A stretch of DNA of 63,445 nt, the filler included, from Octopus bimaculoides (taxonomy: Eukaryota): assembly GCF_001194135.2 (NCBI RefSeq). It is 7 parts of 6 records of this genome, joined end to end, with 100 filler letters (N's around TTAATTAATTAA, not from the genome) between each part and the next. Parts side by side here need not be neighbours in the genome. Positions count along the whole stretch, not along the records: positions 34,653 to 50,586 come from NC_068997.1; 6 more parts are not named here. The stretch is one strand, 5' to 3'. Made by a program: the position numbers and the translations under genes. The notes beneath the pieces were generated by a model that saw only the letters and a program-made list of their open reading frames with translations, was not told the origin of the DNA and made no database searches. This document shows, piece after piece, positions 7,045 to 50,586 of this stretch (position 1 is the first letter of the stretch; each line of letters begins with the position of its first letter).

Positions 7045-7850
7045 CCAGGGCATCCAAAATGTAATATAATGCATATCAAATTATTATTTTTGTCTTTCTC
7101 TCTCTCTCTATTTCTTTCCCACTCTTTCTACCTCCCTCTCTCACTCTCATCCGCTCGCTCTTTCTGTCTATTTATCTGCTTATCTATTTTTCTATTTGTC
7201 AGTTTGCCTGTCTGCCTGTATGTATGCATGTGTTTCTGTACGTATGCATGCATGTATATATGTATGTACCATGCATGCAAGTATGTATCTCATTTATTCA
7301 GTTTATTTCAAGTTTTCTTGCTAATAGAGAAAAAACCGTTTTCTAACCTAGATCCAAAACTTCTTCATTGGAATTACAACATCAACAACAGGGTATATTT
7401 TGTTAGTATGTATGTATGCATGTATGTATGTATGTATGTATGTATGTATGTATGTATGTACGTATGTATGCACAGATTTTTATGTTTTATGTATGTATTC
7501 TCATGCATATAGTTGCATATCTAGACATGCTCATATATATTTAAATGATAAACTTCTGAAAAGTTTTACAGATTTTTACAGTTCCAGTGATGGATTGGAT
7601 CTGTAGTCTTCAAATTAGCTTTCTCCTTTCTGGTTTTGAGAAGCCTAATTTCTCAAGATGTATGTATGTATGTATGTATGTATCAAATCCCGCACAGTGT
7701 CACGAGGTTTGTCTATTTTCCTCGCTTACAACCTTTTGTAGTGGAGTGATAATTTAAGTGGTTCATAGACCATTTGGGGTCTATTTCTAGCAGGCTGGTG
7801 TTGTAATCATTCAACACCCTTATTATTATTTTAATATAAATTAACCATTA

Positions 7851-10311: not shown

Positions 10312-10939
10312 NNNNNNNNNNNNNNNNNNNNNNNNNNNNNNNNNNNNNNNNNNNNNNNNNNNNNNNNNNNNNNNNNNNNNNNNNNNNNNNNNNNNNNNNN
10401 NNNNNNNNNNNNNNNNNNNNNNNNNNNNNNNNNNNNNNNNNNNNNNNNNNNNNNNNNNNNNNNNNNNNNNNNNNNNNNNNNNNNNNNNNNNNNNNNNNNN
10501 NNNNNNNNNNNNNNNNNNNNNNNNNNNNNNNNNNNNNNNNNNNNNNNNNNNNNNNNNNNNNNNNNNNNNNNNNNNNNNNNNNNNNNNNNNNNNNNNNNNN
10601 NNNNNNNNNNNNNNNNNNNNNNNNNNNNNNNNNNNNNNNNNNNNNNNNNNNNNNNNNNNNNNNNNNNNNNNNNNNNNNNNNNNNNNNNNNNNNNNNNNNN
10701 NNNNNNNNNNNNNNNNNNNNNNNNNNNNNNNNNNNNNNNNNNNNNNNNNNNNNNNNNNNNNNNNNNNNNNNNNNNNNNNNNNNNNNNNNNNNNNNNNNNN
10801 NNNNNNNNNNNNNNNNNNNNNNNNNNNNNNNNNNNNNNNNNNNNNNNNNNNNNNNNNNNNNNNNNNNNNNNNNNNNNNNNNNNNNNNNNNNNNNNNNNNN
10901 NNNNNNNNNNNNNNNNNNNNNNNNNNNNNNNNNNNNNNC

Positions 10940-29395: not shown

Positions 29396-29895
29396 CGTGT
29401 CAGTTATTAATGAAGGATTGTCACTCCCGGGGAAAATACTTCATAAGTTCTGTGTTGATACAAATAAACCAAGATAACAAAAGGTTTTCCGATTATTAAA
29501 AAGCCCCATGTCATCCCAGGGCAAAGCCTGAGATTGTGGGCCATCACCAGTCGATTTAGTAAACTCATGGTCACATTCCCCAGTTAACCTGGTCTTTTTT
29601 CGAGAGTAACATACAAGAAAAGGTATAGAATAATAGGCTTTACATGTTGATTTATTCATTCATTTTTTACTTACAGCTGTTTCTGATATGTATTATAGGT
29701 GCGTTCATAGTTCTATGTATTCAATAGCTCTATTTATCGAATAAAAAAATAGTTCAAACGACCTGAAAATAAATCTTGTCATCGTTGATCAGTTGAGCGA
29801 TTCAGTAAAGAGAACTATGAAGACGTGTATAATGTATACCAGAAACAGCCGTAAGTCAAAATGCACGAATAATAAACCACTATTTATGTCTTTTC

Positions 29896-29972
<77 letters not shown>

Positions 29973-30683
29973 CACATAGATGTAAAACAAGATGGAAAAA
30001 ATAATGATCGAATACCAAAGAGAGAGTAAAATACTATTTTATTAAAGCCTAAAAAACTTCACAAACTCTTACCCGGAGTTTCGCGTGACCGATCATCAGA
30101 CATTTGCAATAATAGAGACTGTCAAAACAATTTTATAAATTGATTACAAAGTGTGAGTTTGTATGTATGTATGTATGTGTGTATATATATGTATGTATGT
30201 GTGTATACATACACGCATACAACGATCTATGAAAGTTAAATAACTTTCAGCCTTATAGTGCTTTCGAATCGATAATAAAGCTATGCATAAAGAAATAATA
30301 TTAATTCGTAAATATAAGATCAATGAGGAAGTCACCTCTGATCCTGATGTTACTTCAACAACTGCACCGGTCTATAACAAGTGTCACTAGTCCCAGCAAA
30401 GGCAACCTATATTTTTACTTGCTCACACCTACTTTTACATGAAATTACAACATATTTTCTTGTAATGACAGCAGCTTGCATTGATTTCTGTATGAATTTC
30501 TTACTTATTGTTATCTTTTTAACTGTATCGAATAGTGTAGATGTATAAATACTGAGTAATCGATATGTAGAGAGACAGAGGGTGACTGACACAAAAGAAA
30601 AAGAAAAAGATCTAGACAAATTTACAGCTAAATAAGATGTGTTGTTGAGAGCAGTGCACTTCGTTATTGTTAAACACCATCAA

Positions 30684-30890
30684 GGTCCTGAACTGGCAGA
30701 ATCGTTAGCATGCCGGGGTGAGTTCAAATTCCACCGAGGTTAACTTTGCCTTTCATTCTTTTATTTTCTCTTTTTTGGTGGGGGGAGGGGAACGTCGATA
30801 AAATAAGCACCAGTCAAGCACTGAGGTCGATGTAAGCGACTTACTCCCGCTCCCAGACATGCTGGCTTTGTGCCAGAATTTGAAACCATT
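30684..30890 (+). mobile_element. SINE family B
   Basis: Matches the family unit. Confidence 0.75.
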
Positions 30891-31687
30891 ATTATTTACC
30901 ACCTTCTCCATTTCCTTTATTTTGACCCCACTACCACCACCACCACCACCACCACCACNNNNNNNNNNNNNNNNNNNNNNNNNNNNNNNNNNNNNNNNNN
31001 NNNNNNNNNNNNNNNNNNNNNNNNNNNNNNNNNNNNNNNNNNNNNNNNNNNNNNNNNNNNNNNNNNNNNNNNNNNNNNNNNNNNNNNNNNNNNNNNNNNN
31101 NNNNNNNNNNNNNNNNNNNNNNNNNNNNNNNNNNNNNNNNNNNNNNNNNNNNATAGGGTGATGTCTTCTTCAATAGATGTAATGTTTGTGGTTTAGTATC
31201 CAGGCTCTCCAGCTGACGAGACCCGTTTTAATGTTACATCAATGCCGCCTTCACCACCGCTATCCCCGCCATCGCTATTCCTCTCACCTCCACAATTATT
31301 AGGTCGCTTGTATTTATTCTAATCATTCCGGTATTCTCTTATTCATTTTTTTATTTATTTTTTTAATTTTTCGATTCTTCTCTCAATCGAATCTTGCTTT
31401 CGTTCTTTCTTTTCCCTCTCTTTCAAACCATCTGCCTTTCTTTTCTTTTCTTTTTTTTTCCTCTTTCTCTTTTGCGCTTAATCTTTTATTTATTTATTTA
31501 TCTATTTATTTATTTATTTATTCATTTATTTATTTTCTTTCATGTAGTCTGTCGAATATCGAAATGTTCTTCACGCTCTCTCTCTCACTCTCACTTTCTA
31601 TACACACACATACACATATACATATACACATAAATATATGAATATATAAATATATATACATATATATATACACACACATATACATTC

Positions 31688-34652: not shown

Positions 34653-35880
34653 TAGAAGTTCATGTTGGTATTATGCCTAGGGTGCCATATATTTGGTTTT
34701 GTACATAGTGTTGTTCTAGAGAATGTTTAAGAAACCATAAGAAAATTATGAGTTTGTTTTAAAATTTGAGATTACATAGACAGTATTTTACGTAGGATAT
34801 GGGCAGTTCCCATGAGCATTATCTTTTGAATTTCCGCCATTTTGGGGTTTCATGGTATCTGAGCTAGGTAGCAATCAGCCCTTTTTGCTATCATTCCTAG
34901 GGCACCTATGACAACAGGTATTGTTTTAGTTTTCAGATTCCACATTTTGCTAATTTCTATTTCAAGATCTTTATACTTGCTCAGTTTTTGGTAGGTCTTG
35001 ACAGATACGTTAATTTCGATTGGTACAGTCATATCAATGAGGAGGCATGATATTTGTCTGAAGACTTTCAACATGATGTCTGGCCTATTTGCATCTATCT
35101 TTCTGTCAGTTTGAAGAGTGAAATTTCAGAGGAGTGAGATGTGATCATTTTCAAGCACTGGAGTTGGTTTGTGTTCCACCAGTTTTTATCATGGGGCAAG
35201 TCCAGGTTTTTGCAAATTACCCAGTGAATATATATATTGTGCAGCTCTATCATACCTGTTGAGATACTCTGTAGGCGCAAGAAGACTGCACTTGGAGACA
35301 ACATGGTCAATGGTTTCATTTTGTTGTTGACATAAACGGTATGTTGGGAAGCTACCGTTCTTTATTATGTTCCTTGTAGGTAGGCAATGGCCTTGGGCTG
35401 CTATGATAAACCCTTCTGTTTCAGATTTTAAGCCAGAGGCCATTAGCTATTGATGGGTAAGGGCTTTGTCAACATCGGCATTATTCGCTCTCTTCGGGTA
35501 TTTGCCATTGAGAAGCTTTTCTTGCCATTTATCAGTCAGAATATCTAAGGCAGAAGTTTTAGCACGGGTTTTCATGTGCTTAGCTTTTTCTGCGCTTGTT
35601 TCTCGTATGTCGAATTCCGGAATTTGTTGTATTTGGAATTCACTTAGATATTCCTTAGCCTGTTTTCGCGATAATCTATTCAACGTTTCTGCCTCTTCTT
35701 TGATCCGATTCAAAATAGGCGCACTATGTATGATAATCGGAAATCGCCAGATATTCGTAGTAGGAAATATGTTCTTTTCATTCAAATCCATTTTCTGTAG
35801 CAGCTCTAACCTATTTAGACAGACTTCCTTCGCATTTCCTTTCATCTTCTCACTGGCTATGTCACAAGAAAGCAATATAC
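34653..35880 (-). mobile_element. R4/Dong-like non-LTR retrotransposon 3' fragment (CCHC finger plus restriction-like endonuclease)
   Basis: GLKSETEGFIIAAQ, RLCQQQNETIDHVVSKC, ANRPDI, CLLIDMTVP and KLSKYKDLEIEISKMWNLKTKTIPVVIGALG. Frameshifted. Confidence 0.85.
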
Positions 35881-36003
35881 TCGTACATACATATACTCAT
35901 ATATGAATATAGCGAATAAATGTCAACTACTTGAAAAACAATCTTTCTCACTCACTCACGAATAATTACCGTCTTAGAAAATAATGTGAGAATATTTTGG
36001 TAT

Positions 36004-36079
36004 TTTAACATACTAGACCACTATAGACTTTAACATATTGGACTACTACGGAACTTTAACATACTAGACAACTACATAG
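36004..36079. repeat. Three diverged 25-26 bp tandem units
   Basis: tttaacatactagaccactatagac / tttaacatattggactactacggaac / tttaacatactagacaactacatag. Confidence 0.85.
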
Positions 36080-36469
36080 TTTGTAAATAACCCTGATATA
36101 ATTTTCCAAGAGAAATAACGAAATATTTTTGGAAATAAAAAGACCTAATGTTTAGTAGAAGCAAACTGAAAAGAATGACACCGGCACAGCAAGTGAAGTA
36201 CACCCACAAATAATCTATCAAGGTGGACATAGGCATGTATCATACAACAGTAGTAATAAGGTGTGTATAAAGCCTAACAAAACATTTGTTAACCATAAAC
36301 TTTTTTGATAATGCGAAACATACTCGTCCGTTATGAACAATTATGTTAACCATGAAATTATAATTTTTGTTACGGTTTCATTATCAATTTTGTAATTGCT
36401 CTTAATCATTTTCCAATATGGATTTATTATTGTTCTTTTTTTTTACTTTTCTTCAACTTGATGACACAG

Positions 36470-36703
36470 AGAAATGTCCAATCAATGTATTTTACGGCGG
36501 TATGTTTAGGGATAATGAGGTGATGTCCAAATACAAGATGACAACATACGTTGAGTGTCTGAAAAATTGTGGGAAAAGTACTAAATGCTACTCTACTAAC
36601 TACGACGTGAGCACAGCGGCATGTTACTTAATTGCCAGAAATTCTACTGGCATCGCTATCAGACGTCATTACACGAACTGGATAGGCACTGAAGTCGATA
36701 GAG
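36470..36703 (+). CDS. PAN/apple-domain exon A1 (phase 1-1, 234 nt)
   Basis: Acceptor acacag, donor gtaaga. Reads EKCPINVFYGG...YVECLKNCGKSTKCYSTNYDVSTAACYL...NWIGTEVDR, with C-x3-C-x5-C-x11-C-Y-L PAN spacing and an NST sequon. Paralog at 49432. Confidence 0.85.
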
Positions 36704-36720
36704 GTAAGAAAATTTTTTAG

Positions 36721-36769
<49 letters not shown>

Positions 36770-36770
36770 T

Positions 36771-37020
36771 TTTAAAAAATAACGTTGACCACTAACGTGG
36801 ACAATTAATGTGCTAGAAATAGATCACATCTTGTGTCTATTAAGACCTAAATTGTTCTCAACATGAAATATAGCAGCATACCAAAACGTGAGCGGGCAAG
36901 ACATTTTGGTATGCTGCTATATTTCATGTTGAGAACAATTTAGGTCTTAATAGACACAAGATGTGATCTATTTCTAGTACATTAATTGTCCACGTTAGTG
37001 GTCAACGTTATCTTTTTAAA
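36771..37020. mobile_element. MITE/foldback element with ~116-bp inverted arms and a 17-bp spacer
   Basis: 36771-36886 is the reverse complement of 36904-37020 apart from one mismatch and one indel; TTTAAA at both ends. Confidence 0.85.
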
Positions 37021-37078
37021 ATGTACCTTAATCCCCTGAGATTGCAGATACTATTTCTGAATCTCTTTGATTCTTTAG

Positions 37079-37095
37079 ATGTGCTGGCCTCCTGA
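37079..37095 (+). CDS. Possible short terminal exon after A1 (DVLAS*)
   Basis: Strong pyrimidine tract tttctgaatctctttgattctttag; phase 1 compatible; TGA at 37093-37095. Confidence 0.3.
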
Positions 37096-37584
37096 TAATT
37101 AATCGATATTAATTAATATATGATTAATTACCAGATTTTATAATAATATATATATATATATATATGCCTGTCTGTTTGTCTGTTTATCTGCCTTCCTGTA
37201 TGTCCTTGTATACATACATACATACATACATACATATCTTTTTTTGTAACGTTCGTTCTCGAAGCACATTGTATAAAGCTATGAATAATACTATGTAATT
37301 ATTGGTTTCCAAACCCCATTGGACAGAACGAGTCCAAGGTTAACCGTGTGACTCAAAGCTCATCTCTTATAGATAAATTCGCCTCGAGAGTCAATGTTTC
37401 AAGTAAGAAATCTTTCACGTATTCTCGATTGTTTATGAAATTTTTATGACGAAAATAACGAAGCAGAAAAAGCAAAAACACTTTCTTGGTGTTTGCAGTT
37501 GCAAATGTACGATGAGTAGGGGAACAAACGTTTAAAATACATGAAGTTTTAAAGTTCTTTTTTAAAACACCTCCTTCTGTTATA

Positions 37585-38570
37585 TTGAAATATCTGTTTA
37601 AGACGACCTTCGGACCGGGACCTATGGACAACTTCCAGAGATCCCTGGCCTGGCAGTGTTATCGAGAAGCACTACCCGTTCGGGATAAGCTCTACAGGCA
37701 TGGCTCGAGAAACATGGGGCCGACCTGTCCGAGATGCCGACAGAGCGACGAAACCGTTCTGCACGCACTCGTACAGTGTCCCACCATTTCCGAGCTGTGG
37801 GCTTACGTCGAACAACTGCTATCGCGTGTGGGACGAGTCGGTCTATCAGCCGAGTCTATCGTGAATATTGTCGCGCCTCCTTCCTTTAAACGGGAAGGAA
37901 GAGCTATTTTCATCGTACTTGTGGCTNNNNNNNNNNNNNNNNNNNNNNNNNNNNNNNNNNNNNNNNNNNNNNNNNNNNNNNNNNNNNNNNNNNNNNNNNN
38001 NNNNNNNNNNNNNNNNNNNNNNNNNNNNNNNNNNNNNNNNNNNNNNNNNNNNNNNNNNNNNNNNNNNNNNNNNNNNNNNNNNNNNNNNNNNNNNNNNNNN
38101 NNNNNNNNNNNNNNNNNNNNNNNNNNNNNNNNNNNNNNNNNNNNNNNNNNNNNNNNNNNNNNNNNNNNNNNNNNNNNNNNNNNNNNNNNNNNNNNNNNNN
38201 NNNNNNNNNNNNNNNNNNNNNNNNNNNNNNNNNNNNNNNNNNNNNNNNNNNNNNNNNNNNNNNNNNNNNNNNNNNNNNNNNNNNNNNNNNNNNNNNNNNN
38301 NNNNNNNNNNNNNNNNNNNNNNNNNNNNNNNNNNNNNNNNNNNNNNNNNNNNNNNNNNNNNNNNNNNNNNNNNNNNNNNNNNNNNNNNNNNNNNNNNNNN
38401 NNNNNNNNNNNNNNNNNNNNNNNCCTTTTGATCGAACTACCCCCTTTTCCTTCCTACGATCCCTTTTGATCGACCCCCCCCTTTTTTTTTCTTTCCCCCT
38501 CCCAAAAAGAAAAGCTCTACATTGTATTTGTCCCATCTTCGTTGAGCCCTGTGTGGCTAATAAAAGAAAT
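37585..38570 (+). mobile_element. Tx1/L1-clade LINE 3' end (zinc-binding domain, N gap, 3' UTR)
   Basis: WQCYREALPVRDKL...CPRCRQSDETVLHALVQC; after the gap a pyrimidine-rich UTR ends in aataaaagaaa. Confidence 0.8.
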
Positions 38571-39197
38571 GTAACTGATACAAAACTATTTGGAAAAATC
38601 CCGACCGAAACGGAGAATTTCCAACTTATACGGAATAGCTATTCCGAAGGTCCGCTCTTTTCAGTAAAGTAATTTTAAAGTGTTCATCAAATTGGAATAG
38701 TACAAAATGGCGAAGTATATAGAAAGAACAAGAAAGAAAATAAGTTTCGATTTACTGTTTTTCAGTGTTCTGATATCTTTTTATCGTTTATATTTTACTT
38801 ATTTTAGTCATTTGACTGCGGCCATGTTGGGGCACCATCAAAAATGTCGGCTCTGTTATACCCACATCATCAGCGGCTGTCCCAAAATGTCTCCAGGATA
38901 CTACCTACTGATATGCTGGGGCAACTGCCCCCTTTTGCCATCCCACTACTATAAATCTACTTATGTATATAGTGGATGAGAAGATAAGCAGCGGATTAGT
39001 GCTCGGACTAATCGGATTCTGAAGCTCATTATTCCTTATCAGAGTAAGGCTGTCCAGAAGTATAAGAGTTGTCTATAAGTTAAAGCGGACAGTTATAGAG
39101 GAAGGATAAAATGCTGCTAATAGTAAGGAGGCTTGCCACTCGGTTTGCGCAATTGTGCAAACTGGTTTGGGGAAACACACACATATATCTAAGAATA

Positions 39198-39583
39198 GTT
39201 GCAATGGCCCAGTGGTTAGGGCAGCGGACTCGCGGTCATAGAATCGCGGTTTCGATTCTCAGACCGGGCGTTGTGAGTGTTTATTCAGCGAAAACACCTA
39301 AAAGCTCCACGAGGCTCCGGCAGGGGATGGTGGCGAACACTGCTGTACTCTTTCACCACAACTTTCTCTCACTCTTACTTCCTGCTTCTGTTGTGCCTGT
39401 AGTTCAAAGGGTCAGCCTTGTCACACTGTGTCACGCTGATTATCCCCGAGAACTACGTTGAGGGTAAACGTGTCTGTGGAGTGCTCAGCCACTTGCACGT
39501 TAATTTCACGAGCAGGCTGTTCCGTTGGTCGGATCAACTGGAACCCTCGACGTCGTAAGCGACGGAGTGCCAACAACAACAAC
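39198..39583 (+). mobile_element. SINE family A, full length with 11-bp TSD
   Basis: ATCTAAGAATA at 39187-39197 and 39584-39594; (CAA)n tail. Confidence 0.9.
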
Positions 39584-39870
39584 ATCTAAGAATACTTAAA
39601 GATAGCAATTGTTTTTTGAGTTTCTTATTGTTAATGGCAATACATACCAGGCAGACCCGCACACTCACACACACACACACACACACACACTAACACACAC
39701 ACATATACACGCATACACACGCATACATGCATGCACGTACATACTCATAAACGCAGGTATTCATATCGAGAAACGGTGAGAGGAAGGGAGAGCTAGAACG
39801 AGAGAAAGGGATATTTCAATGCTTGTTTCACCTTCTCTGTCCTCGTGATATTTCTGCATGTGTCCACTAG

Positions 39871-39968
39871 CAACCTTTGAAAAACTGACCGCTAACGGCT
39901 CAATCTTAACACACCCAGAGGGCGGCCAGCAGGTCTACAGATACCGCTTCTTATTCCACGTTCAGCAA
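39871..39968 (+). CDS. Candidate exon of unknown domain in the PAN cluster
   Basis: cactag acceptor; open phase-1 frame TFEKLTANGSILTHPEGGQQVYRYRFLFHVQQ; gtaatg donor in phase 0, which does not match the next candidate exon's main acceptor. Confidence 0.3.
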
Positions 39969-40023
39969 GTAATGTGTGTGCATATATATCCTTATGTGTG
40001 TGTGTGAGTTTCTTTCTTTCTTA

Positions 40024-40116
<93 letters not shown>

Positions 40117-40177
40117 GGTGTATGTATATTATGTGTTAATACACAAATAATAGTAAAATAATGTCGTTGTTTTTCAG

Positions 40178-40267
40178 ACAAGTTTGACAACGACCCAAAT
40201 GTTTTGAGGGATTTAAATGAAAAAGGGTGTGATCTGAAATTTCTCTATGTTCTCAACGTCATAGATG
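40178..40267 (+). CDS. Candidate phase 1-1 exon (90 nt) in the PAN cluster
   Basis: gttgtttttcag acceptor; KFDNDPNVLRDLNEKGCDLKFLYVLNVID; gtaaag donor; the other two frames hit stops. Confidence 0.4.
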
Positions 40268-40735
40268 GTAAAGTATAACTTTCAGTAACTTATTCATGTA
40301 GCATATTTGTTTTAGTAGTGCTTAACTAAAGATATCAATGAGAGCAATTTAAGTCTCTAAATCCTAAGAATGTGAACGCGATCAAATCCTTTTTCTCTCA
40401 AACAGGTCAACTAATATTTGCTCTGTTGTAATCAGATTGCTATGGTTTGCTCCTTCTACTATTCTTTTATTTGTAGTATCGCCCTTCGTCTCCGATTGAT
40501 CGCTGGCATTTTATTTTAATATAATTTTTGTCAATTTAAAAAATTTCATTTTTTCTGATTCAGTCCTTAATCTCTTCAATCTCGGATAAAAATAGTAAAA
40601 CAAGTTTTTAATTTTTATTTCTTATTTATACCAAAATACAGGTAAATAACACGTATTGAGTAAATGTTTAAAGAATTCAATAATCAATATGCTTAATCTT
40701 TAGCAAGGATAAATGAAAATTTTGTTAACATTAAG

Positions 40736-41110
40736 TTGTTGTTGTTGGCACTCCGTCGCTTACGACGTCGAGGGTTCCAGTTGATCCGACCAACGGAACA
40801 GCCTGCTCGTGAAATTAACGTGCAAGTGGCTGAGCACTCCACAGACACGTGTACCCTTAACGTAGTTCTCGGGGATATTCAGCGTGACACAGTGTGACAA
40901 GGCTGACCCTTTGAATTACAAGCACAACAGAAACAGGAAGTAAGAGTGAGAGAAAGAGTACAGCAGGGTTCGCAACCATCCCCTACTGGAGCCTCGTGGA
41001 GTTTTAGGTGTTTTCGCTGAATAAACACTCACAACGCCCGATCTGGGAATCGAAACCTCGATTCTATGACCGCGAGTCTGCTGCCCTAAACACTAGGCCA
41101 TTGCGCCTCC
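40736..41110 (-). mobile_element. SINE family A
   Basis: Reverse complement of the 39198 copy. Confidence 0.85.
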
Positions 41111-41252
41111 ACTTGTATATATGTATATATAAACACGTATATAAACATATATATATGGATGCATACGTACATGCACTGCACGTGTACCTACATATATAAA
41201 AAGATATTCGTGGATGCATGTATGGGCTCTCGCACACGCCTCCGTATGTATG

Positions 41253-41286
<34 letters not shown>

Positions 41287-41406
41287 TGTATGTGCACGTT
41301 TAAATCAGCCGTAGAATTGGTATAGTAACATTCACAAATGTAAAAAAAACACAATTTCATAGCGCTTTCCATTCCTCATATTGTTTTACCTTTTATATTT
41401 CCACAG

Positions 41407-41603
41407 AGAGAACGTATCCTAGCGATGATACTATGCGGAGGGGAGTTCTTTTCTCCAAGCGGCAGAACACATCAGGTAACATTAAGATGACACCAGCCAT
41501 CGATGTTGATGGCATTTTCGATTGTGCAATCAGATGTATGACATCTTCGGAATGTCTTGGTTTCAAATACGAGTCACAATGTCAAATGGCAGTCAAATAT
41601 TGA
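41407..41603 (+). CDS. Terminal PAN/apple-domain exon C (absent from the ORF track)
   Basis: ttttccacag acceptor, phase 1. Reads RTYPSDDTMRRGVLFSKRQNTSGNIKMTPAIDVDGIFDCAIRCMTSSECLGFKYESQCQMAVKY*, with C-x3-C-x5-C-x-G-F-x-Y spacing. Confidence 0.72.
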
Positions 41604-41930
41604 AGTTCAAGAGAATTCTGTAAAACCTGTTCTTCACAAAAACATACAAGGAGAATATATTTTTGTCTTTCTTTTTTTGTGTTGCAGACATCTTGCGGAT
41701 ATCTGTGACGTTTTCGCTTTTCGAATGATATCCTACGCTGTCCATAACTAGTTTTGGAAATGTATGTTTCCTGATAAATCTAGTATTAGTTATGCTTTTT
41801 GAAATAACATCATCGTTACAGTGGTGTTTGTATATTGCAGCCATAAAAAAAAATATAGAAGAACCATGCCATAATGATTAACATTTATTGTGAAATCTAG
41901 TAGTGTTCAATTGCACAAATTTGTTTATAG

Positions 41931-41984
<54 letters not shown>

Positions 41985-42434
41985 TAGTGAAGATTTCTCA
42001 CAATTGTCTTATGACAATGTAAATGAGACTCTGGGCAACAGTTTTGTGTATATTTTTCATCATCAATAAAATAATAATGCTCTCTGTTATTGGTATTCGA
42101 GTGCTATTTTTCTCCACGTTGTNNNNNNNNNNNNNNNNNNNNNNNNNNNNNNNNNNNNNNNNNNNNNNNNNNNNNNNNNNNNNNNNNNNNNNNNNNNNNN
42201 NNNNNNNNNNNNNNNNNNNNNNNNNNNNNNNNNNNNNNNNNNNNNNNNNNNNNNNNNNNNNNNNNNNNNNNNNNNNNNNNNNNNNNNNNNNNNNNNNNNN
42301 NNNNNNNNNNNNNNNNNNNNNNNNNNNNNNNNNNNNNNNNNNNNNNNNNNNNNNNNATATATATATATATATACATCTAAGTCTGTATGAAAACATGTTC
42401 TTCTTTCCTACGGATATATCATCCAAGCGTACAC

Positions 42435-42510
<76 letters not shown>

Positions 42511-43409
42511 CAGGGGTCTTCCACACACTTTTCATGTATTAAATTCACTCACAAGCTCATTGTTCGGCACATGGATAGTGGGGTAGAAAAACTTGCTAAA
42601 GATCTCTCGCACTATACACAAAACCCCAAACGACATGATTGCAACTACGGCTGAATTACAATTTCCTTGATATTAGATTTAGCGTGTAAAGATAGGGGAC
42701 GACCGAACTGGTCAGTGAAAAGCATACATAAGACAATGACACAAAACAATATGAATTGGAAATTAAGTCCTGACTTGGAATCTGAATTGCGTGATAAAGT
42801 GTCATAAAATGGCTGACATTGATACTGACGTGTTTGTAGAACGACATTTTGCTTATTTATTGTTATATAATACAAAGTAAAGCTGCGTGAAACTACATGA
42901 TTTTATGTTATGTACTTTTGACACGTAAATTTTCAATAGCATAACTTTCTCTTCAAGGATTCCTTTCAAGCAAGTACGATGTTGAGAAGTATATGAAGGG
43001 GGTGGGGCTGAAATGTGGTTTGCTTCTTAATTTCTTTTGTTTTTAATTGATTAAAATAGCCAATGGTGATAATGGCAAATCAATCCAGTAAACCTTAAGA
43101 AATGAATCTGGCTTCATATGTAAACACACAGACACAGACACAAGCACACACAGACACACACAAACATAGAAACATACATACATACACACATACATACACA
43201 CATATATGCATACACACATGCATGCATACATACATAGATACATATATACATACAAACATACATGCATACATTAATAACTACCTACCTACCTACCTGCCTG
43301 CCTACATGCATACATGCATACATACGTACATATATATTTATTATTTCTATGCATGTATGTATCTATGCATGCACGTATATATATATATATATATATATAT
43401 ATACGTTCG

Positions 43410-43455
<46 letters not shown>

Positions 43456-43652
43456 TGTTTCCATGCATTATCTACCGCCATTTCTTGTTATATCACCAGT
43501 TCCCTAGTTACGCTGCGTTCTGCCGCTCCACCCTCACTCATTCTATCTCGCACACTCGCTCTCCCTTTCTCTCCCCACTCTCTCTAAATATAATATACAA
43601 TTTAATCTCCACTTCGAAGTAGATCTTAGTAATTTATTGGAACCAACAAGTC

Positions 43653-43680
43653 ATGTGGAAACATCTTCTATTCTGCTTTG
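43653..43680 (+). CDS. First coding exon, signal peptide part 1 (MWKHLLFCF)
   Basis: ATG, 28 nt, then a perfect G|GTAAGT donor in phase 1. Confidence 0.6.
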
Positions 43681-44384
43681 GTAAGTTCACTTTGTCTTTG
43701 TCATTTCTGTTGGTATTGATGCTATTCTTGTACAATATTTCATCAGCTTGGGCCCCGCAGACCTGACTATCGCGTGATTTATTTTATTTGCGTGACATAG
43801 TCTATCTAGGAGCACATTATTCCATGTAACCTTCATGTTTTTAAAGACGACAATAGGCCCCATAATAATGGCAGATTTAGTTGCTCTTTCCGGCAGGTTA
43901 AAACACTTTGTAAATAAATCCTTAGATGAATCGATTAACATTAGGCTGAAATTGGCCCAACTATACTCAGGTCGGGTTTAATATAGCAGGCCTAAAATAA
44001 AAGACCTTGCATCTATGACCATTGCATCTGTCCTTGGTCAGTTATAAGGTGTCAAGAATTTCGTCATCGAATCGACTCTTTTCAGTTAAGATTGCAGAAT
44101 AGAATTTCGGGTACGTTTGACTTCTGTTTCCTCTCACCTCAACTGTATGGCTTAAACGTAATGTCGACCTTGGTGACGTTTGAACTGAAGACACTGAAAA
44201 CGGAAACAGAAATCCTAAGGTATTCTCTCTTGCAGTAAATCACCAGTATTGTGTAGCCCCAAACCCAACCCTCATTGGATACTCACTTATGCTCAAATGC
44301 ATTCCAACCGTGATCATTCTGTATATTTTCTAAGAATACTAAACCCGCAACTACATTATTCAATAAATTTATTTTTCTAAAACA

Positions 44385-44690
44385 GGCATATGGCGTAGTG
44401 GTTGAAAGCGCGGGCTACTAACTCCAAGATTCCGAGTTCGATTCCGGACAGTGATCTGAATAATAATAATAATAATAATAACAACAACGATGATGATGAT
44501 GATGATAAAGATGATGATGATGATGATGACATCGAAAACTACCTTAGGAATGAGGACCCAGGTTCGAAATTTCCCCAAGACACCTGATGAAGGCTGGAGG
44601 GTATATCAGCCGAAAAATTGTGTTAACAACAAACAAATGTAAATAATGTAAATAATGTACATGATTCCTCATCTCTTAAATATAGAACTG
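44385..44690 (+). mobile_element. tRNA-headed SINE family C with AAT/GAT spacer and hammerhead-bearing tail
   Basis: A box TGGCGTAGTGG (44391-44401), B box GTTCGATTCC (44436-44445), and CTGATGA-A-GGCTG...CAGCC-GAAA at 44584-44615. Confidence 0.7.
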
Positions 44691-45447
44691 TATTGTTGTT
44701 GTTGTTGTTTAGCCCCAGGCTCGTCCTGACTTAGAAAACGCATCATCAAAGTTGTTTCAGTCATGGAACTCTCATCTTGTGGTCATCTAAAAAAACGTTT
44801 TCTTGTGTATCCCTCCGTTTTTAAGAAGGTAGAGATTGAATTAATACAATTTGGCTGCTGTTTGTAACACAGCGACTGATCATGTAGAATCTCCCGCGTT
44901 GATGTCGACTAGTTGCCATAGAAATATTTTATTCCATTTCTTCTTCTTCTTCTTCTTCTTCTTCTTCTTCTTCTTCTTCTTCTTCTTCTTCTTCTTCTTC
45001 TTCTTCTTCTCCGTCTTCTTCTCCATTTATTTCTTTTTAATTATTTTTATTTCATCTTGTTGAAAATACTTCTTGATAAGAACGATGAAAGAAAAAGCGA
45101 TGCTTACTTTCAGTGTGTTTAACGAAAAATGGATGAGAACTGCGAGACTGGCGAAACTGCAGAGATCTTCCCCTGAACTTGCTCTTCTCAGTTGAAGGAA
45201 TTGGGAGAGCGAACAGTGGCAGAGTAATCTGAGGCTAGCCTTCTCCCATATTAGGAAATATTTTTCGTTTATTTGTTGAACAGCTTTCTGAGAATTTCTT
45301 TTGATCCTTTATTTTTCTTAGCCTCATTTCACACGATGCAAACCCGGCAGTTGTTTTGTGTTGTATGTTCGTATTTTGTACTTGTATTGTCCTAAATGAA
45401 ACCCCCCTCCTTTTCATCATCATCATTATTATTATTATTATTATTAC

Positions 45448-45507
<60 letters not shown>

Positions 45508-46379
45508 GTATGCTGCGGAGTACGTCAGGCGTGTTTTTGAACGCACGAAATAATTCCTCGTTAATTTCATTGCGTACACCCGTTTGAAATTGTCTTTTGG
45601 TTGGAATTTTCACCCCAAGTGGTAACTGAAAATTTTAGGAACCCGTTACTGGGTCAGTTGTGGCTGTTTTGCCCCTTAAGGGGAAAATTTCGGCCCTCCT
45701 GAAAATTGCTCGAGAGGCATTAAGAACAATAATTTTATTAAGACGGCGGTATCTTCCTTAAAACTTTTCAAAGGCAAATCAATTCCTCCCCCAGCCTTCT
45801 TATAGCTGAAGACTTCCCTCCGCTTCCTTCTCTTACCAAAAATTGTGCAGGAGAAGGGGAGGAGACAAAAGAGATGGAAACGGACAGAAGGAAGAGGTCA
45901 TTAGTGAAAAAATGTCTATGACAACAATAACGGCAGCATCAGAAGTGGTGGTAGTGGAAGTGACGAAAGCGGTGGGGATAGTGGCAGGATAGATAGCAAA
46001 TATGGAAGCAGTAACGACAGTAGCAGTAACAGTAGCAGAGAAGCAATTCAGGCAGTGGCGGCAGGAGCGACGATAGCGGTGGTAACGGAGTGCTTCGAGG
46101 CAGCGGTGGTAGTGGCGATGGTAGCAACAATGAAAGTGGCTTTCCCATCCCCACCAAGAGTAGTAAGACGTTTTTTGCCGGCGTCTCAAAAGAGCATTTT
46201 ACACTCTCCCTAGGAAATCAAACCTCTAACAAAAGCTATCACCACCAGCACAACCAACACCACCACAACCCCACATCACCTCCAAAAGAATGCTTTTGGA
46301 AGAACTGCTAAACTCTCAGACCCCGAATTCTGTGTTAGTGAGGAGAGCAAATAAAGATGTCATGGCCCTCATAACTCGA

Positions 46380-46650
46380 AATAAAGAGATTGAGAGAGAG
46401 GGAGCAATAAAGACACCAAAACGCTTAAATTGCCGGAAGAGCTTTTGTTAGTGCGTGTGCCACCAACAACGTACAAAAACATTGGGGACGGAGCAGCCAG
46501 GTTTCTTCCGATGTTTGGAGATTTTTCCTGAGACATCTCGCTCTTTAGTTCTAGCAGGCGATCGGAACACCATCCTGGATGCACGCCTGGATAGTGTGGG
46601 GTTAGCTGATAGGAGAGGGGGAGTGCAAAGGCGTCACAAACCAGGTGCCT
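46380..46650 (+). mobile_element. Tx1/L1 endonuclease fragment
   Basis: LEIFPETSRSLVLAGDRNTILDARLDSVG is a degenerate GDxN motif. Confidence 0.6.
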
Positions 46651-46843
46651 AGCTGCAGGCCCACGAACTTCACCTAATTAATCTTTGATCCTGTCACCGC
46701 TTCGTACTCCCTTGAAGTAGAGCCGAGAGTAAAACCAACTCGAAAACTAGAAGTCACAGCTCTACTGTTGTAGTGAAGGAGCTTGTAGATTAATACTAAT
46801 TTTATTTCTTTATCATAGTACATATATCATCTTCTCATTTCAG

Positions 46844-46876
46844 TATTGAATATATTGCTGAAGGCCCAGGGAACAG
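46844..46876 (+). CDS. Second coding exon, signal peptide part 2 (VLNILLKAQGT)
   Basis: cttctcatttcag acceptor, 33 nt, phase 1-1, CAG|GTATGT donor; completes the hydrophobic core and an A-x-G cleavage motif. Confidence 0.65.
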
Positions 46877-47074
46877 GTATGTAAGTTGAGANNNNNNNNN
46901 NNNNNNNNNNNNNNNNNNNNNNNNNNNNNNNNNNNNNNNNNNNNNNNNNNNNNNNNNNNNNNNNNNNNNNNNNNNNNNNNNNNNNNNNNNNNNNNNNNNN
47001 NNNNNNNNNNNNNNNNNNNNNNNNNNNNNNNNNNNNNNNNNNNNNNNNNNNNNNNNNNNNNNNNNNNNNNNNNN

Positions 47075-47111
<37 letters not shown>

Positions 47112-47577
47112 AATATATGCACACAGACATCTCAAAAGTAAATATACTCGCCTTTCTTTGTGCAGACACGACTCATTACTACGATGCATCAAAACGGTAA
47201 CATCATTAAATACTGCACAAGGCGTTTGTAAAAATAGTGAATAAAATATTTCAACCTATCAAATGACATTATTTTGTTTGTTGGAAAATAAATCTTATGG
47301 AAATGATGTCGAATATTTACTTTCAAGATGTCTGTGTATTTACGAGTGTTATACCGAAACTCATGCAAATGTAGACATAACGTTTTTATTACCAGTTATA
47401 GGTCGTCCAAATTACATATATTGGTAGAGTAACTATTTTATTTTAGCGATGCTTAAAATACTTGGATATTAGTAACGGAAGTGATATTAATCTTGACCTA
47501 CATTCCGAAATTGGTGCACTCTGGAAACAAACTAAACACATACCGTTGTATAGCGGTTATTATTTCCTAAAATATAT

Positions 47578-47885
47578 TTCGGGGTCGATAAATTAAGTAC
47601 CAATTGTGTACTGGGGTGGGTCTAATCGACTGCTCCCCCCCCCCAAAAAAAAATTTCAAGCCTTGTGCCTGTAATAGAAAAGAAAAGAAACGTTAGCATG
47701 CCGGGCTAAATGCTTAGAGCTATATTTCGTCTGTTCTGGGTTCCCATTCTTCCGAGGTCGACTTTGCCTTACATCCTTTCGGGGGTCGATAAATTAAGTA
47801 TCGGTGAAACACTGGGGTTGATGTAATCGACTTATCGCCTCCCTATAAAAATTGTAAGCCTTGTACCTTTAGTAGAAAGGGTTAT
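47578..47885 (+). mobile_element. One partial and one near-complete SINE family B copy
   Basis: Matches the family unit; ends about 15 nt before the acceptor of exon D. Confidence 0.75.
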
Positions 47886-47902
47886 TTATATTTTTTATGC
47901 AG

Positions 47903-48132
47903 TTGCCGAAGCTAATTTTCCAAGCACAAGTAAGTTCATGAAAGTCAGCAAAACCAGACCTCCTAAATATATCAAGTGGACAGAGAAGAAAATACCTCTC
48001 GAAAATTGTGCAGATACATGTCTTAAAATGCAGACATGTAAATCTTTTACTTACTACAAACAACGATCCCACTGCAGACTGTACGAGACATGGAGCGGCG
48101 AAATCCGAATGGCTCATGCCAGAAAACAGTAA
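47903..48132 (+). CDS. PAN/apple-domain exon D ending in a stop codon
   Basis: ttttttatgcag acceptor, phase 1. Reads AEANFPSTSKFMKVSK...ENCADTCLKMQTCKSFTYYKQRSHCRLYETW...ARKQ*, with C-x3-C-x5-C-x-S-F-x-Y...C-x-L-Y. Confidence 0.8.
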
Positions 48133-48559
48133 ACGGTAAACATTCTTCTTCTTGTTCTTCTTGTTGTTGTTCTTTTCTTCTTCTTCCTCCTCCACCTCCT
48201 CCTCCACCCCTCCTTTACCCCTTCCCCCTCATTTTCCTCCACTTTCTCATCCTCCTACTCCACTCTTTCTCCTCCACTTGCTCTTNNNNNNNNNNNNNNN
48301 NNNNNNNNNNNNNNNNNNNNNNNNNNNNNNNNNNNNNNNNNNNNNNNNNNNNNNNNNNNNNNNNNNNNNNNNNNNNNNNNNNNNNNNNNNNNNNNNNNNN
48401 NNNNNNNNNNNNNNNNNNNNNNNNNNNNNNNNNNNNNNNNNNNNNNNNNNNNNNNNNNNNNNNNNNNNNNNNNNNNACCCTCTGTCTCCTCCTCCTCACC
48501 CTCTGTCTCCTCCTCCTCACCCTCTGTCTCCTCCTCCTCACCCTCTGTCTCCTCCTCCT

Positions 48560-48790
48560 CCTCTGCCGCCTCCCTTCCTCTTTGCATTTCTATTTTCGAC
48601 AATGCCTTCAGGTTTGTGGTCGTACCAATGTTTTGCTCTGTCAAGTCCATACTTGTTGCAAAGTGTCCAATGGACAAGCCTGGCTATATCGCTGTGGCGT
48701 CTCTTATATTCTTTTTGGGCTAGTGGCGTACATTGGCTGGTAATATACTGTACGGTTTCACCGTTTTGTCCACAGTTTCTGCACACCGCT
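48560..48790 (-). mobile_element. R4/Dong-like LINE fragment
   Basis: CRNCGQNGETVQYITSQCTPLAQKEYKRRHSDIARLVHWTLCNKYGL...WYDHKPEGIVEN. Confidence 0.8.
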
Positions 48791-49431
48791 TTCTGCTGTG
48801 TTGTCTATATTATTATTATTGTTATTATTGTTGTTGTTGTTTTTGTTTTTGCTGTTGTTTTTTACCGATGAGTGTGTTAAATAACAAGGCACTAAAAGAG
48901 GATAACTCTCCCCAGACACCACAAAATAAAAGAGTACTAGACAACTAAATAGTTCGTAATAATCCTGACATAATTTTCCAAGACAAATAGGGAAATATTG
49001 CTGGAATTACGAACATAGCAAAACCAAATGTTAAGAACATGCAAACTGTAAAACTAAAGAATTACACAGAACTAATGCAAAATATTTGATATTTAAGAAA
49101 ATAAAAGCATTACTCCAAGTTTTTCAGTTTTCATTATATAACTGGTATGATAAACAACCGCTTATGGTACGTACTCCCACAAATAATCTATCATGGTAAA
49201 CACAGGAATGTACCATAATACAGTAGTAATGTGTGTAAAATAGCCTGTCGAAAATATTTGTTAACCATAAACATTTTTGATAATACGTAACAAACTCGTC
49301 ATATATGAACAAATATATTAACCATGACTTTTTTGATAATGAAACCGTAATTTTGTTACTGTTTCATTATCAATTTATTTTCTTGTATGAATTTATTATT
49401 GTTCTTTTTATTTATTTTTTTGTTGACACAG

Positions 49432-49665
49432 AGACATGTCCCATCAATGTTTTTTACGGTGGTAAGTTTACAAATTCGAAATTTATATCCACACTAAAAC
49501 CGAAATCATACATTGATTGTCTGAAAGCTTGTAGAGACACTACTTCATGCTACTCTACTAACTTCAACGTGAACACAACCACATGTTACTTGAATCCCGA
49601 TAACTCTACTGGCTTCAATATCAGAAGACGATCCAAAAACTGGATATCTACTGAAGTCGACAGAG
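49432..49665 (+). CDS. PAN/apple-domain exon A2 (phase 1-1, 234 nt), paralog of A1
   Basis: acacag acceptor, gtaact donor. Reads ETCPINVFYGG...YIDCLKACRDTTSCYSTNFNVNTTTCYL...NWISTEVDR; 44/78 aa identical to A1; NTT and NST sequons. Confidence 0.85.
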
Positions 49666-49719
49666 GTAACTGAAACATTTTAATCTATCTCAGATAACTT
49701 AGATAATTCAGATTGGTTT

Positions 49720-49764
49720 CGGCCATTATCGGTCATTATCGGCCATTTCGGCCATTATCGGTCC
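49720..49764. repeat. 10-bp minisatellite (cggccattat) x about 4.5
   Basis: Direct reading. Confidence 0.85.
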
Positions 49765-49799
49765 AGACTATGACTAACTCAATAGCACCACCTGGAAAA

Positions 49800-50040
49800 G
49801 TCTTTTAATTAATTATTTCGGGACACCATGGACCACTGAATCAGAGAGTTGCTGTTGGCTGAGACGTAGGTGGTTTGTCCGATATTTGTCCAGGTACCGT
49901 TTGAAAGTTGTGGTGTTTTTTTCTACTTCAATTTCTTTCGGGATTACATTGAAAAGAGCAGGACCATTTGCAGTGAGGAAATTGTGCCGCAATATTCTTA
50001 TGTGATGTGATCTCGACCTTTGTAGGGAACGCATTGCACG
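49800..50040 (-). mobile_element. CR1-type LINE 3' end fragment
   Basis: RHNFLTANGPALFNVIPKEI...FKRYLDKY. Confidence 0.7.
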
Positions 50041-50200
50041 GGGGTGGGGAGGGGGCTAGTATTGGGTGAATTGTAAACATAAGACCGATATCATTTGAAT
50101 AATATTCGTGGAATATTTTCCACTTGGTGCAAATAATATATTGCTCACGGCGGCGTTGCAGTTCTCTGCTTCAGCTATTTAAGTCGAGCCCAATAACCAC

Positions 50201-50269
<69 letters not shown>

Positions 50270-50529
50270 CCTTGAAAATGGTAATTTCAAGGTCATTTGT
50301 TGGTCATACGCAGAAAGAAGACCCAAAGAAATTTCAACAAGTGACATCTTTCTGCTAATGTATATGTTTGTTTCTGTGTATATGCAGACATATACACATA
50401 GGTTCACATATACATACAAGCATACATACATACATACATACGTACATACGCACATACATACATACATACATACATATATTCATACATACGCACATACATA
50501 CATAAGTATGTGTGTGTGTGCGTATGTGT

Positions 50530-50586
<57 letters not shown>

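Follow-up and report, generated by a model that had tools for sequence, protein, structure and literature searches.

The PAN/Apple superfamily (PF00024) includes the N-domains of HGF and plasminogen, the apple domains of factor XI and prekallikrein, apicomplexan MIC4 and SML-2, and nematode PAN proteins, and PAN domains generally mediate protein or carbohydrate binding. A gene of this superfamily lies in a 63,445-nucleotide (nt) stretch of Octopus bimaculoides DNA (RefSeq assembly GCF_001194135.2), which is called the window here and covers the whole stretch that was analysed. Its positions 34653-50586, from record NC_068997.1, are AT-rich, repeat-rich eukaryotic DNA with five assembly gaps. 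An earlier note had joined three segments of this region, 43653-43680, 46844-46876, and 47903-48132, into a complete secreted protein of 96 amino acids (aa) with a single PAN domain. The present analysis indicates that the three segments are very probably exons 1-3 of a six-exon gene for a secreted protein with three PAN domains, and that the 96-aa open reading frame (ORF) is the product of a 19-nt lesion in the third exon, exon D.

The three exons are part of O. bimaculoides LOC106868212 on chromosome record CM046617.1 (locus L003; window position = L003 position + 21078). The locus was recognized by searching exhaustively with phmmer for relatives of the exon-D peptide, which yielded XP_014768861.2 (P0002; O. 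bimaculoides, 391 aa, 'uncharacterized protein LOC106868212'); the last 86 residues of this protein match exon 2 plus exon D without a difference. Further models at this locus are XP_014768861.1 (471 aa) and the UniProt entries A0A0L8HWE2 (274 aa) and A0A0L8HWE5 (365 aa), both named 'Apple domain-containing protein'. A0A0L8HWE5 spans all six exons of an upstream gene copy (copy 1) and measures 278 aa when counted from MLQYLVFYF. Two other species provide reference loci. The O. vulgaris locus (L002, OX597830.1) is gapless, collinear with the window, and holds both gene copies, and O. sinensis LOC118766662 isoform X2 (XP_036366106.1) is a 277-aa 'uncharacterized protein'.

Comparison with the Closest Described Systems

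The closest relatives of the window gene are XP_036366106.1 and its counterpart at the O. vulgaris locus, which share orthologous exons 1 (28 nt) and 2 (33 nt), a D-type PAN domain, the same junctions, and a basic composition. The N-terminus reads MRKRLLFCFVLNILLNAQGTVAEANIPSTSKFMKVSK... in XP_036366106.1 and MWKHLLFCFVLNILLKAQGTVAEANFPSTSKFMKVSK... in the window. In contrast to the window, the D exon of these orthologues is 252 nt long and internal, and the protein runs on through two further PAN domains and a linker, whereas window exon D is 19 nt shorter and stops. The annotated protein of LOC106868212, XP_014768861.2, includes exons 2 and D unchanged and terminates at the window's TAA, and the D1-A-linker-B series of copy 1 is the paralogue of the window gene. 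However, XP_014768861.2 fuses the tandem copies and omits exon 1, the exon at which the orthologues start.

Likeness to the wider superfamily consists of matches to the PAN_1, PAN_2, PAN_3, and PAN_4 profiles and of the core cysteine pattern C-x3-C-x5-C-x11-C. Unlike apple domains, the octopus domain lacks the outer cysteine pair and has four cysteines, as do the HGF and plasminogen N-domains. The octopus protein also has no kringle, protease, or lectin partner, and the window copy is without the C-terminal segment of the domain. A PDB sequence search gave marginal matches to the HGF N-domain, Toxoplasma gondii MIC4, and microneme antigen L2 (E 0.6-0.7). Among the exon-D matches looked up, all those with a name are 'uncharacterized' Octopus proteins and the others are nameless, and the close family appears restricted to octopods among the named matches. 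No homology to any named toxin or antimicrobial peptide was found, the close relatives with names looked up being 'uncharacterized' or 'Apple domain-containing', and neither these loci nor octopus PAN proteins turned up in a literature search.

Frameshift and Stop Codon in Exon D

The features of the downstream copy (copy 2) on which the argument depends are as follows.

43653-43680, plus strand: exon 1, 28 nt, beginning with ATG and encoding MWKHLLFCF, the first part of the predicted signal peptide; donor TTG|GTAAGT
46844-46876, plus strand: exon 2, 33 nt, phase 1-1, encoding (V)LNILLKAQGT, the remaining predicted signal peptide and cleavage region; donor CAG|GTATGT
47903-48135, plus strand: exon 3 (exon D), 233 nt to the conserved donor ACG|GTAAAC, encoding the D-type PAN domain
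49432-49665, plus strand: exon 4 (exon E), 234 nt, phase 1-1, encoding an intact A-type PAN domain (ETCPINVFYGG...STEVDR; PAN_1 31 bits) between canonical AG/GT sites

A DNA alignment of four D-type exons (window D, O. vulgaris D, and the D1 paralogues of both species) places one 19-nt gap in window exon D, between 48118 and 48119 (CATG^CCAG). The exon is thus 233 nt long in the window versus 252 nt in O. vulgaris, where it is internal and of phase 1-1. The sequence on either side of the gap aligns well, including the donor and the (TTC)n run that follows it, and CATCTGTACGAGGATACTA is the O. vulgaris sequence that the ~19 extra bases would be expected to resemble. Because the deletion shifts the frame, the PAN frame meets a TAA at 48130-48132, 3 nt ahead of the conserved donor. 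The +1 frame of window D still reads QKTVN before ACG|GTAAAC, which compares with ...GYYQKTVN|ETCPINV in O. vulgaris, and with the missing 19 nt restored exon E would follow exon D in frame. The TAA is missing in paralogue D1, O. vulgaris, and O. sinensis.

The intact form of the gene can be read from the relatives. The O. vulgaris copy-2 exons (28, 33, 252, 234, 90, and 197 nt, all with AG/GT sites) form an uninterrupted 834-nt ORF of 277 aa starting MRKCLLFCFVLNILLNAQGTVAEANIPSTSKFMK, to which XP_036366106.1 is 98% identical over 100% coverage. The same six-exon order is found here, with exons 1, 2, D, and E collinear in the window and the terminal exon B2, intact and with canonical splice sites, downstream of the window at L003 32131-32327. 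Exon E and O. vulgaris exon 4 share 91% of their amino acids and 96.6% of their nucleotides, compared to 91-94% for its flanks and 87.5% for exon D. The D-type exon is internal in the paralogue, O. vulgaris, and O. sinensis, in proteins of 277-278 aa. The exon structure, the intact downstream exons, and the non-conserved stop therefore argue that there is no conserved stand-alone PAN gene at this place. Of the claims in the earlier note, that of a 'complete' 96-aa protein is not borne out, the stop being non-conserved and made by the deletion, and that of a stand-alone single-PAN gene is unsupported, the D-type exon being internal in the relatives.

The normal product would be a basic secreted protein of ~277 aa with a signal peptide, a D-type PAN domain, an A-type PAN domain, a 30-aa cysteine-containing linker, and a B-type PAN domain ending CQMAVKY-stop. 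In this assembly, the loss of 19 nt from exon 3 shifts the frame and brings in a stop 3 nt before the intact donor. If the downstream exons are still spliced on, this premature stop would lie >300 nt upstream of the last junction, and the transcript would likely be a target of nonsense-mediated decay. A transcript escaping decay would encode the signal peptide and a C-terminally clipped PAN domain.

Several points weigh against this account. The copy-2 linker exon is unseen in O. bimaculoides, and presumably falls within a ~1.8-kb gap at L003 ~29510-31330. The junctions of the window itself are deduced from sequence comparison, and the current RefSeq protein (P0002) ends at the same TAA, with exon D accepted as the last coding exon. 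Exon D is otherwise undecayed, as would be expected if the lesion were very recent or an artefact of assembly or haplotype, and likewise if a truncated product were still constrained. Among the 18 amino acid differences between the O. bimaculoides and O. vulgaris exons, 10 arose in the O. vulgaris lineage and 2 in that of O. bimaculoides.

The near absence of lineage-specific change in exon D beyond the deletion also bears on the origin of the 19-nt loss, which may be a recent lesion, a variant of one haplotype, or an assembly error. If the deletion is an assembly error or confined to one haplotype, the real gene would be the intact six-exon, three-PAN gene of ~277 aa, and the 96-aa product would be absent in most or all alleles. 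This explanation is unlikely, yet it keeps a tangible share of the probability. In its favour, exons 1, 2, E, and B2 are intact and conserved, as are every splice site and the donor of exon D, and in the short-read draft exon D is confined to a 1.2-kb contig with a gap at either end (47075-48285). Since these gaps and the stop in exon D recur in L003, that record offers no independent check. On the contrary, the deletion site CATG^CCAG is non-repetitive, and a clean 19-nt loss there would, in our judgement, be an unusual short-read error. Moreover, the same stop is worked around in both RefSeq annotation versions (P0049, P0002).

Exons 1-3 and Their Splicing

Joined in order, 43653-43680, 46844-46876, and 47903-48132 give 291 nt that translate to exactly the 96 aa reported earlier, so the splice in frame stands. 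The junction signals are TTG|GTAAGT, ...TCATTTCAG|TATTG, CAG|GTATGT, and ...TTATGCAG|TTGCC. The counterparts of exon 1, at L003 ~7216-7243 in the paralogue and at L002 22929-22956 in O. vulgaris, agree with it in length, ATG, and donor. The O. vulgaris micro-exons lie at orthologous places and encode MRKCLLFCF (28 nt) and VLNILLNAQGT (33 nt). O. sinensis XP_036366106.1 starts MRKRLLFCFVLNILLNAQGTVAEANIPSTSKFMK... and carries both the exon 1/exon 2 and the exon 2/D junctions, while exon 2 is present in the RefSeq models P0002 of O. bimaculoides and P0050 and P0055 of O. sinensis. The two micro-exons with their GTAAGT and GTATGT donors, as the earlier note had them, are thus kept in the paralogue and in O. 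vulgaris. Judged by this conservation, they and exon D are real exons, spliced in the order and phase given above.

Upstream of exon 1 and between the exons lie the following features.

43585-43652, plus strand: putative core promoter and 5' leader of copy 2, with TATA-like TAAATATAATATA at 43585-43597 followed by a conserved ~55-nt block up to the ATG
43681-46843, plus strand: intron 1, 3.2 kb, microsatellite- and repeat-rich
46892-47074: assembly gap in intron 2, within or next to an (AC)n microsatellite

In alignment, the leader block CAATTTAATCTCCA.TTC.AAGTA.ATCTTAGTAATT.ATTGG.ACCAACA is kept in the O. vulgaris orthologue and in the upstream paralogue, and 43585-43652 may act as a core promoter.

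The gap in intron 2 opens 15 nt past the donor of exon 2 and leaves 828 nt between its end and the exon-D acceptor, with (AC)17.5 at its right edge (47075-47109). Its flanks, 46731-46891 and 47099-47437, align to L002 27634-27797 and 27801-28140, which are adjacent in the gapless O. vulgaris sequence. Both sides are therefore collinear, and the frame is set by splicing and not by gap length. By this alignment, the gap 46892-47074 is an intronic microsatellite left unresolved in the assembly, with no predicted coding consequence.

Some further observations concern the introns and exon D itself. A stretch of ~1.2 kb in intron 1 (45508-46730), whose short ORFs gave no Pfam match, is missing from the collinear place in O. 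vulgaris; from the alignment, it is a lineage-specific insertion or deletion. Short repeats resembling short interspersed elements (SINE-like) occur in introns 1 and 2 (44385-44460, and 47577-47680 / 47777-47878) and in many copies across the O. vulgaris locus. The pair just upstream of exon D consists of two ~105-nt copies with 75% identity, and an ARAGORN scan of the stretch near 44385-44460 found no transfer RNA. Within exon D, 27 nt past the exon start, a strong donor-like site, CAA|GTAAGT at 47927-47935, fits phase 1 and is the same in O. vulgaris. Its use would join VAEANFPST to exon E in frame and bypass the frameshifted PAN domain.

PAN Domain and Protein Properties

Membership of the PAN family was judged by a profile score above the Pfam gathering cut-off (PF00024, PAN_1). 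The 96-aa model scores 34.6 bits with PAN_1 (cut-off 21.4) and 29.6 bits with PAN_2 (cut-off 21.1), and exon D alone reaches 35.4 bits with PAN_1, so the PAN domain of the earlier note is confirmed. The core cysteines read ENCADTCLKMQTCKSFTYYKQRSHC, and all four are kept in O. vulgaris, O. sinensis, and both D1 paralogues. The domain match covers positions 8-55 of the 76 in the PAN_1 profile, compared to 17-74 of 76 for paralogue D1 (...YYYYQKILD). The deletion and frameshift remove the GYYQK segment, which in D1 aligns to the last part of the profile, and the PAN domain of the 96-aa product would therefore be clipped at its C-terminus. The O. sinensis orthologue was modelled with AlphaFold2 from a 5-sequence alignment. 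The model shows the strand-helix-strand-strand order expected of a PAN fold, in which a helix packs on an antiparallel sheet, but with a mean predicted local distance difference test (pLDDT) of 48 and a predicted template modelling score (pTM) of 0.38 its confidence is too low for it to be used.

The N-terminus of the 96-aa model, MWKHLLFCFVLNILLKAQGTVAEAN...., was assessed by reading and hydropathy, the layout sought being a basic n-region, an h-region of 7-15 hydrophobic residues, and small residues at -3 and -1. It divides into MWKH, an 11-residue hydrophobic core LLFCFVLNILL (mean Kyte-Doolittle value 2.94), and KAQG|T. The basic n-region, hydrophobic core, and AQG|T cleavage-like motif thus agree with the claim of a signal-peptide-like N-terminus divided over the two micro-exons. 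This n/h/c layout is kept in three species, copy 1 being less hydrophobic, and would fit a secreted product. Richness in lysine and arginine is equally evident, with 11 Lys and 5 Arg versus 6 acidic residues, and the predicted mature form of 77 residues has a net charge of +10 and an isoelectric point (pI) of 9.77. The D domain of O. sinensis has a net charge of +9 and the whole mature orthologue +16 (pI 9.3), and therefore the charge is not particular to the short form. In copy 1, the D domain is acidic (pI 5.4).

These properties can be read as those of a functional, complete 96-aa secreted cationic peptide with a single PAN domain, antimicrobial, toxin-like, or glycosaminoglycan-binding, with the truncation retained as a new small product. 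The ORF has good splice signals and a signal-peptide-like N-terminus, its PAN_1 score exceeds the cut-off with four core cysteines retained, its net charge is +10 at a pI of 9.8, exon D keeps ancestral residues in O. bimaculoides, and XP_014768861.2 stops at the same TAA. Such a peptide nevertheless has only a slim chance of being the real product. Its stop comes from a frameshifting deletion and is shared by neither paralogue nor orthologues, the donor, exon E, and exon B2 remain intact behind it, the last PAN segment is lost, and the basic charge belongs to the whole orthologous protein. No poly(A) hexamer (AATAAA or ATTAAA) occurs within the 153 nt read after the TAA, although such a hexamer lies ~460 nt downstream of the true terminal exon B and ~320-620 nt downstream of two O. 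vulgaris terminal exons. Neither an identical protein nor an identical ORF was found on record: a word-indexed protein search with the 96-aa model gave no match, but is uninformative as it missed the 86 identical residues of P0002, and the contiguous 64-aa ORF MKVSK...RKQ has no identical entry.

In a more specific form, the deletion would be real and fixed, and a transcript terminated in exon D would escape decay to yield a lineage-specific, secreted, 77-residue cationic clipped PAN mini-protein with a function of its own. The 2 O. bimaculoides-branch versus 10 O. vulgaris-branch substitutions in exon D are compatible with continued constraint, but such a mini-protein is considered very doubtful. 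An antimicrobial, toxin, or glycosaminoglycan-binding role, drawn from charge alone, would be speculation.

Tandem Pair and Fused Models

Upstream of the frameshifted gene, the window holds part of copy 1.

36470-36703, plus strand: copy 1 exon 4 (exon A), A-type PAN domain, contained in P0002, P0006, and P0048
40178-40267, plus strand: copy 1 exon 5, 30-aa linker DKFDNDPNVLRDLNEKGCDLKFLYVLNVID
41407-41603, plus strand: copy 1 terminal exon 6 (exon B), B-type PAN domain ending CQMAVKY-TGA, with an internal cryptic donor CAG|GTAACA after 41475

The PAN-gene exons of the window (A, linker, B, D, and E) are all on the plus strand and in phase 1, with canonical AG/GT sites. Copy-1 exon 1, ATGTTGCAATATCTTGTATTTTATTTCG|GTAAGTTCAC, is 28 nt long (ATG...TTTCG), encodes MLQYLVFYF, and stands behind the same ~55-nt leader as copy 2. 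Exon 2 of copy 1 has 33 nt, encodes AVNPVVNDLGT, and shares the GTATGTAAGTTGAGA donor with copy 2. The D1 exon contains no stop; its end reads ...YYYYQKILD G|GTAAACATTCTTC, and the next exon is A. Exon E is a paralogue of exon A, with 74% nucleotide identity including the flanks. From this shared layout, the locus is a tandem pair of paralogous genes, each arranged as ex1(28)-ex2(33)-D-A-linker-B.

The RefSeq model divides the locus differently. Exon 2 and exon D would end the 391-aa protein XP_014768861.2, which starts far upstream and passes through copy 1, leaving exon 1 unused. The phases fit, since P0002 reads ...SKRQNTS|VLNILLKAQGT|VAEANF..., and in O. sinensis isoform X1 (P0055) exon 2 of copy 2 similarly follows on the linker exon of copy 1. 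Read-through (conjoined) transcripts of the tandem copies may also occur beside the normal transcript. However, this arrangement ignores the conserved ATG-bearing exon 1 and its conserved leader, and depends on the cryptic donor CAG|GTAACA, which does not look conserved and halves the B-type PAN domain. No other model has a counterpart of its N-terminal exon (MASNAY...), and the three differing models of the locus (391, 471, and 365/274 aa) are what uncertain automatic merging typically makes of tandem paralogues. In O. sinensis, by contrast, isoform X2 gives a simple six-exon gene. As the structure of the downstream gene, the RefSeq model is accordingly held to be improbable, and the separate six-exon gene beginning at exon 1 is preferred.

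An exon of the upstream copy is joined to copy-2 exon 2 in the RefSeq models of two species, through the cryptic donor in O. bimaculoides (41407-41475 with 46844-46876) and from the linker in P0055. The fused models suggest that transcripts read through both copies or, alternatively, that the tandem paralogues were merged by automatic annotation. Copy 1 also contains, at L003 ~10747-10776, a duplicated exon-2-like micro-exon encoding LEAVMQKKK, with the same acceptor and GTATGTAAGTTGA donor, ~230 nt upstream of the true exon 2, and XP_014768861.2 includes it.

A/E-type exons were also considered as first exons with signal peptides of their own (MDLLLFFFF..., and MTLFLLLSF... in P0001). The idea was rejected, as these stretches are polypyrimidine tracts before the conserved CAG| acceptor and all annotated relatives have a D-type exon in front. 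A contig of 977 nt from Logan SRR11869394 (L001) carries an A/E-type PAN exon with 66% aa identity, the same CAG| acceptor, and a GAG|GTAAGT donor, and its polypyrimidine tract was misread as a 'signal peptide' (MTLFLLLSFTFG) by a prokaryote-style gene call. No third A-type exon was found between B and D, in the sequence or at the collinear place in gapless O. vulgaris.

The remaining observations concern repeats around copy 1 and rates of change. A 403-nt inverted repeat with 91% identity (39181-39583 and 40735-41124) flanks the copy-1 linker exon, and a copy of its element elsewhere supplies the spurious N-terminus of A0A0L8HWE5 (MLLALRRLRRRGFQLIR...). A retrotransposon remnant at 37585-37926, plus strand, matches zf-RVT ('zinc-binding in reverse transcriptase') at 36.6 bits and runs into the gap at 37927; a weaker zf-RVT match of 19 bits lies at 35189-35443, minus strand. 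Between O. bimaculoides and O. vulgaris, the ratio of nonsynonymous to synonymous substitution rates (dN/dS) is ~0.8-2 for exons D, E, B, and the linker, with too few sites to separate neutral from adaptive change. Exon E shows 1 synonymous change in ~51 synonymous sites, unusually low for this locus.

Implications for the Octopod PAN Family

The value of these results is mainly for annotation, and they have no bearing on an open question. The RefSeq model of LOC106868212 fuses two tandem paralogues and misses the true first exon of the downstream copy, which the micro-exons recover. For the family, the comparison points to a small octopod group of basic secreted three-PAN proteins that would be fast-evolving with their cysteines kept, one O. 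bimaculoides copy of which may carry a fresh frameshift.

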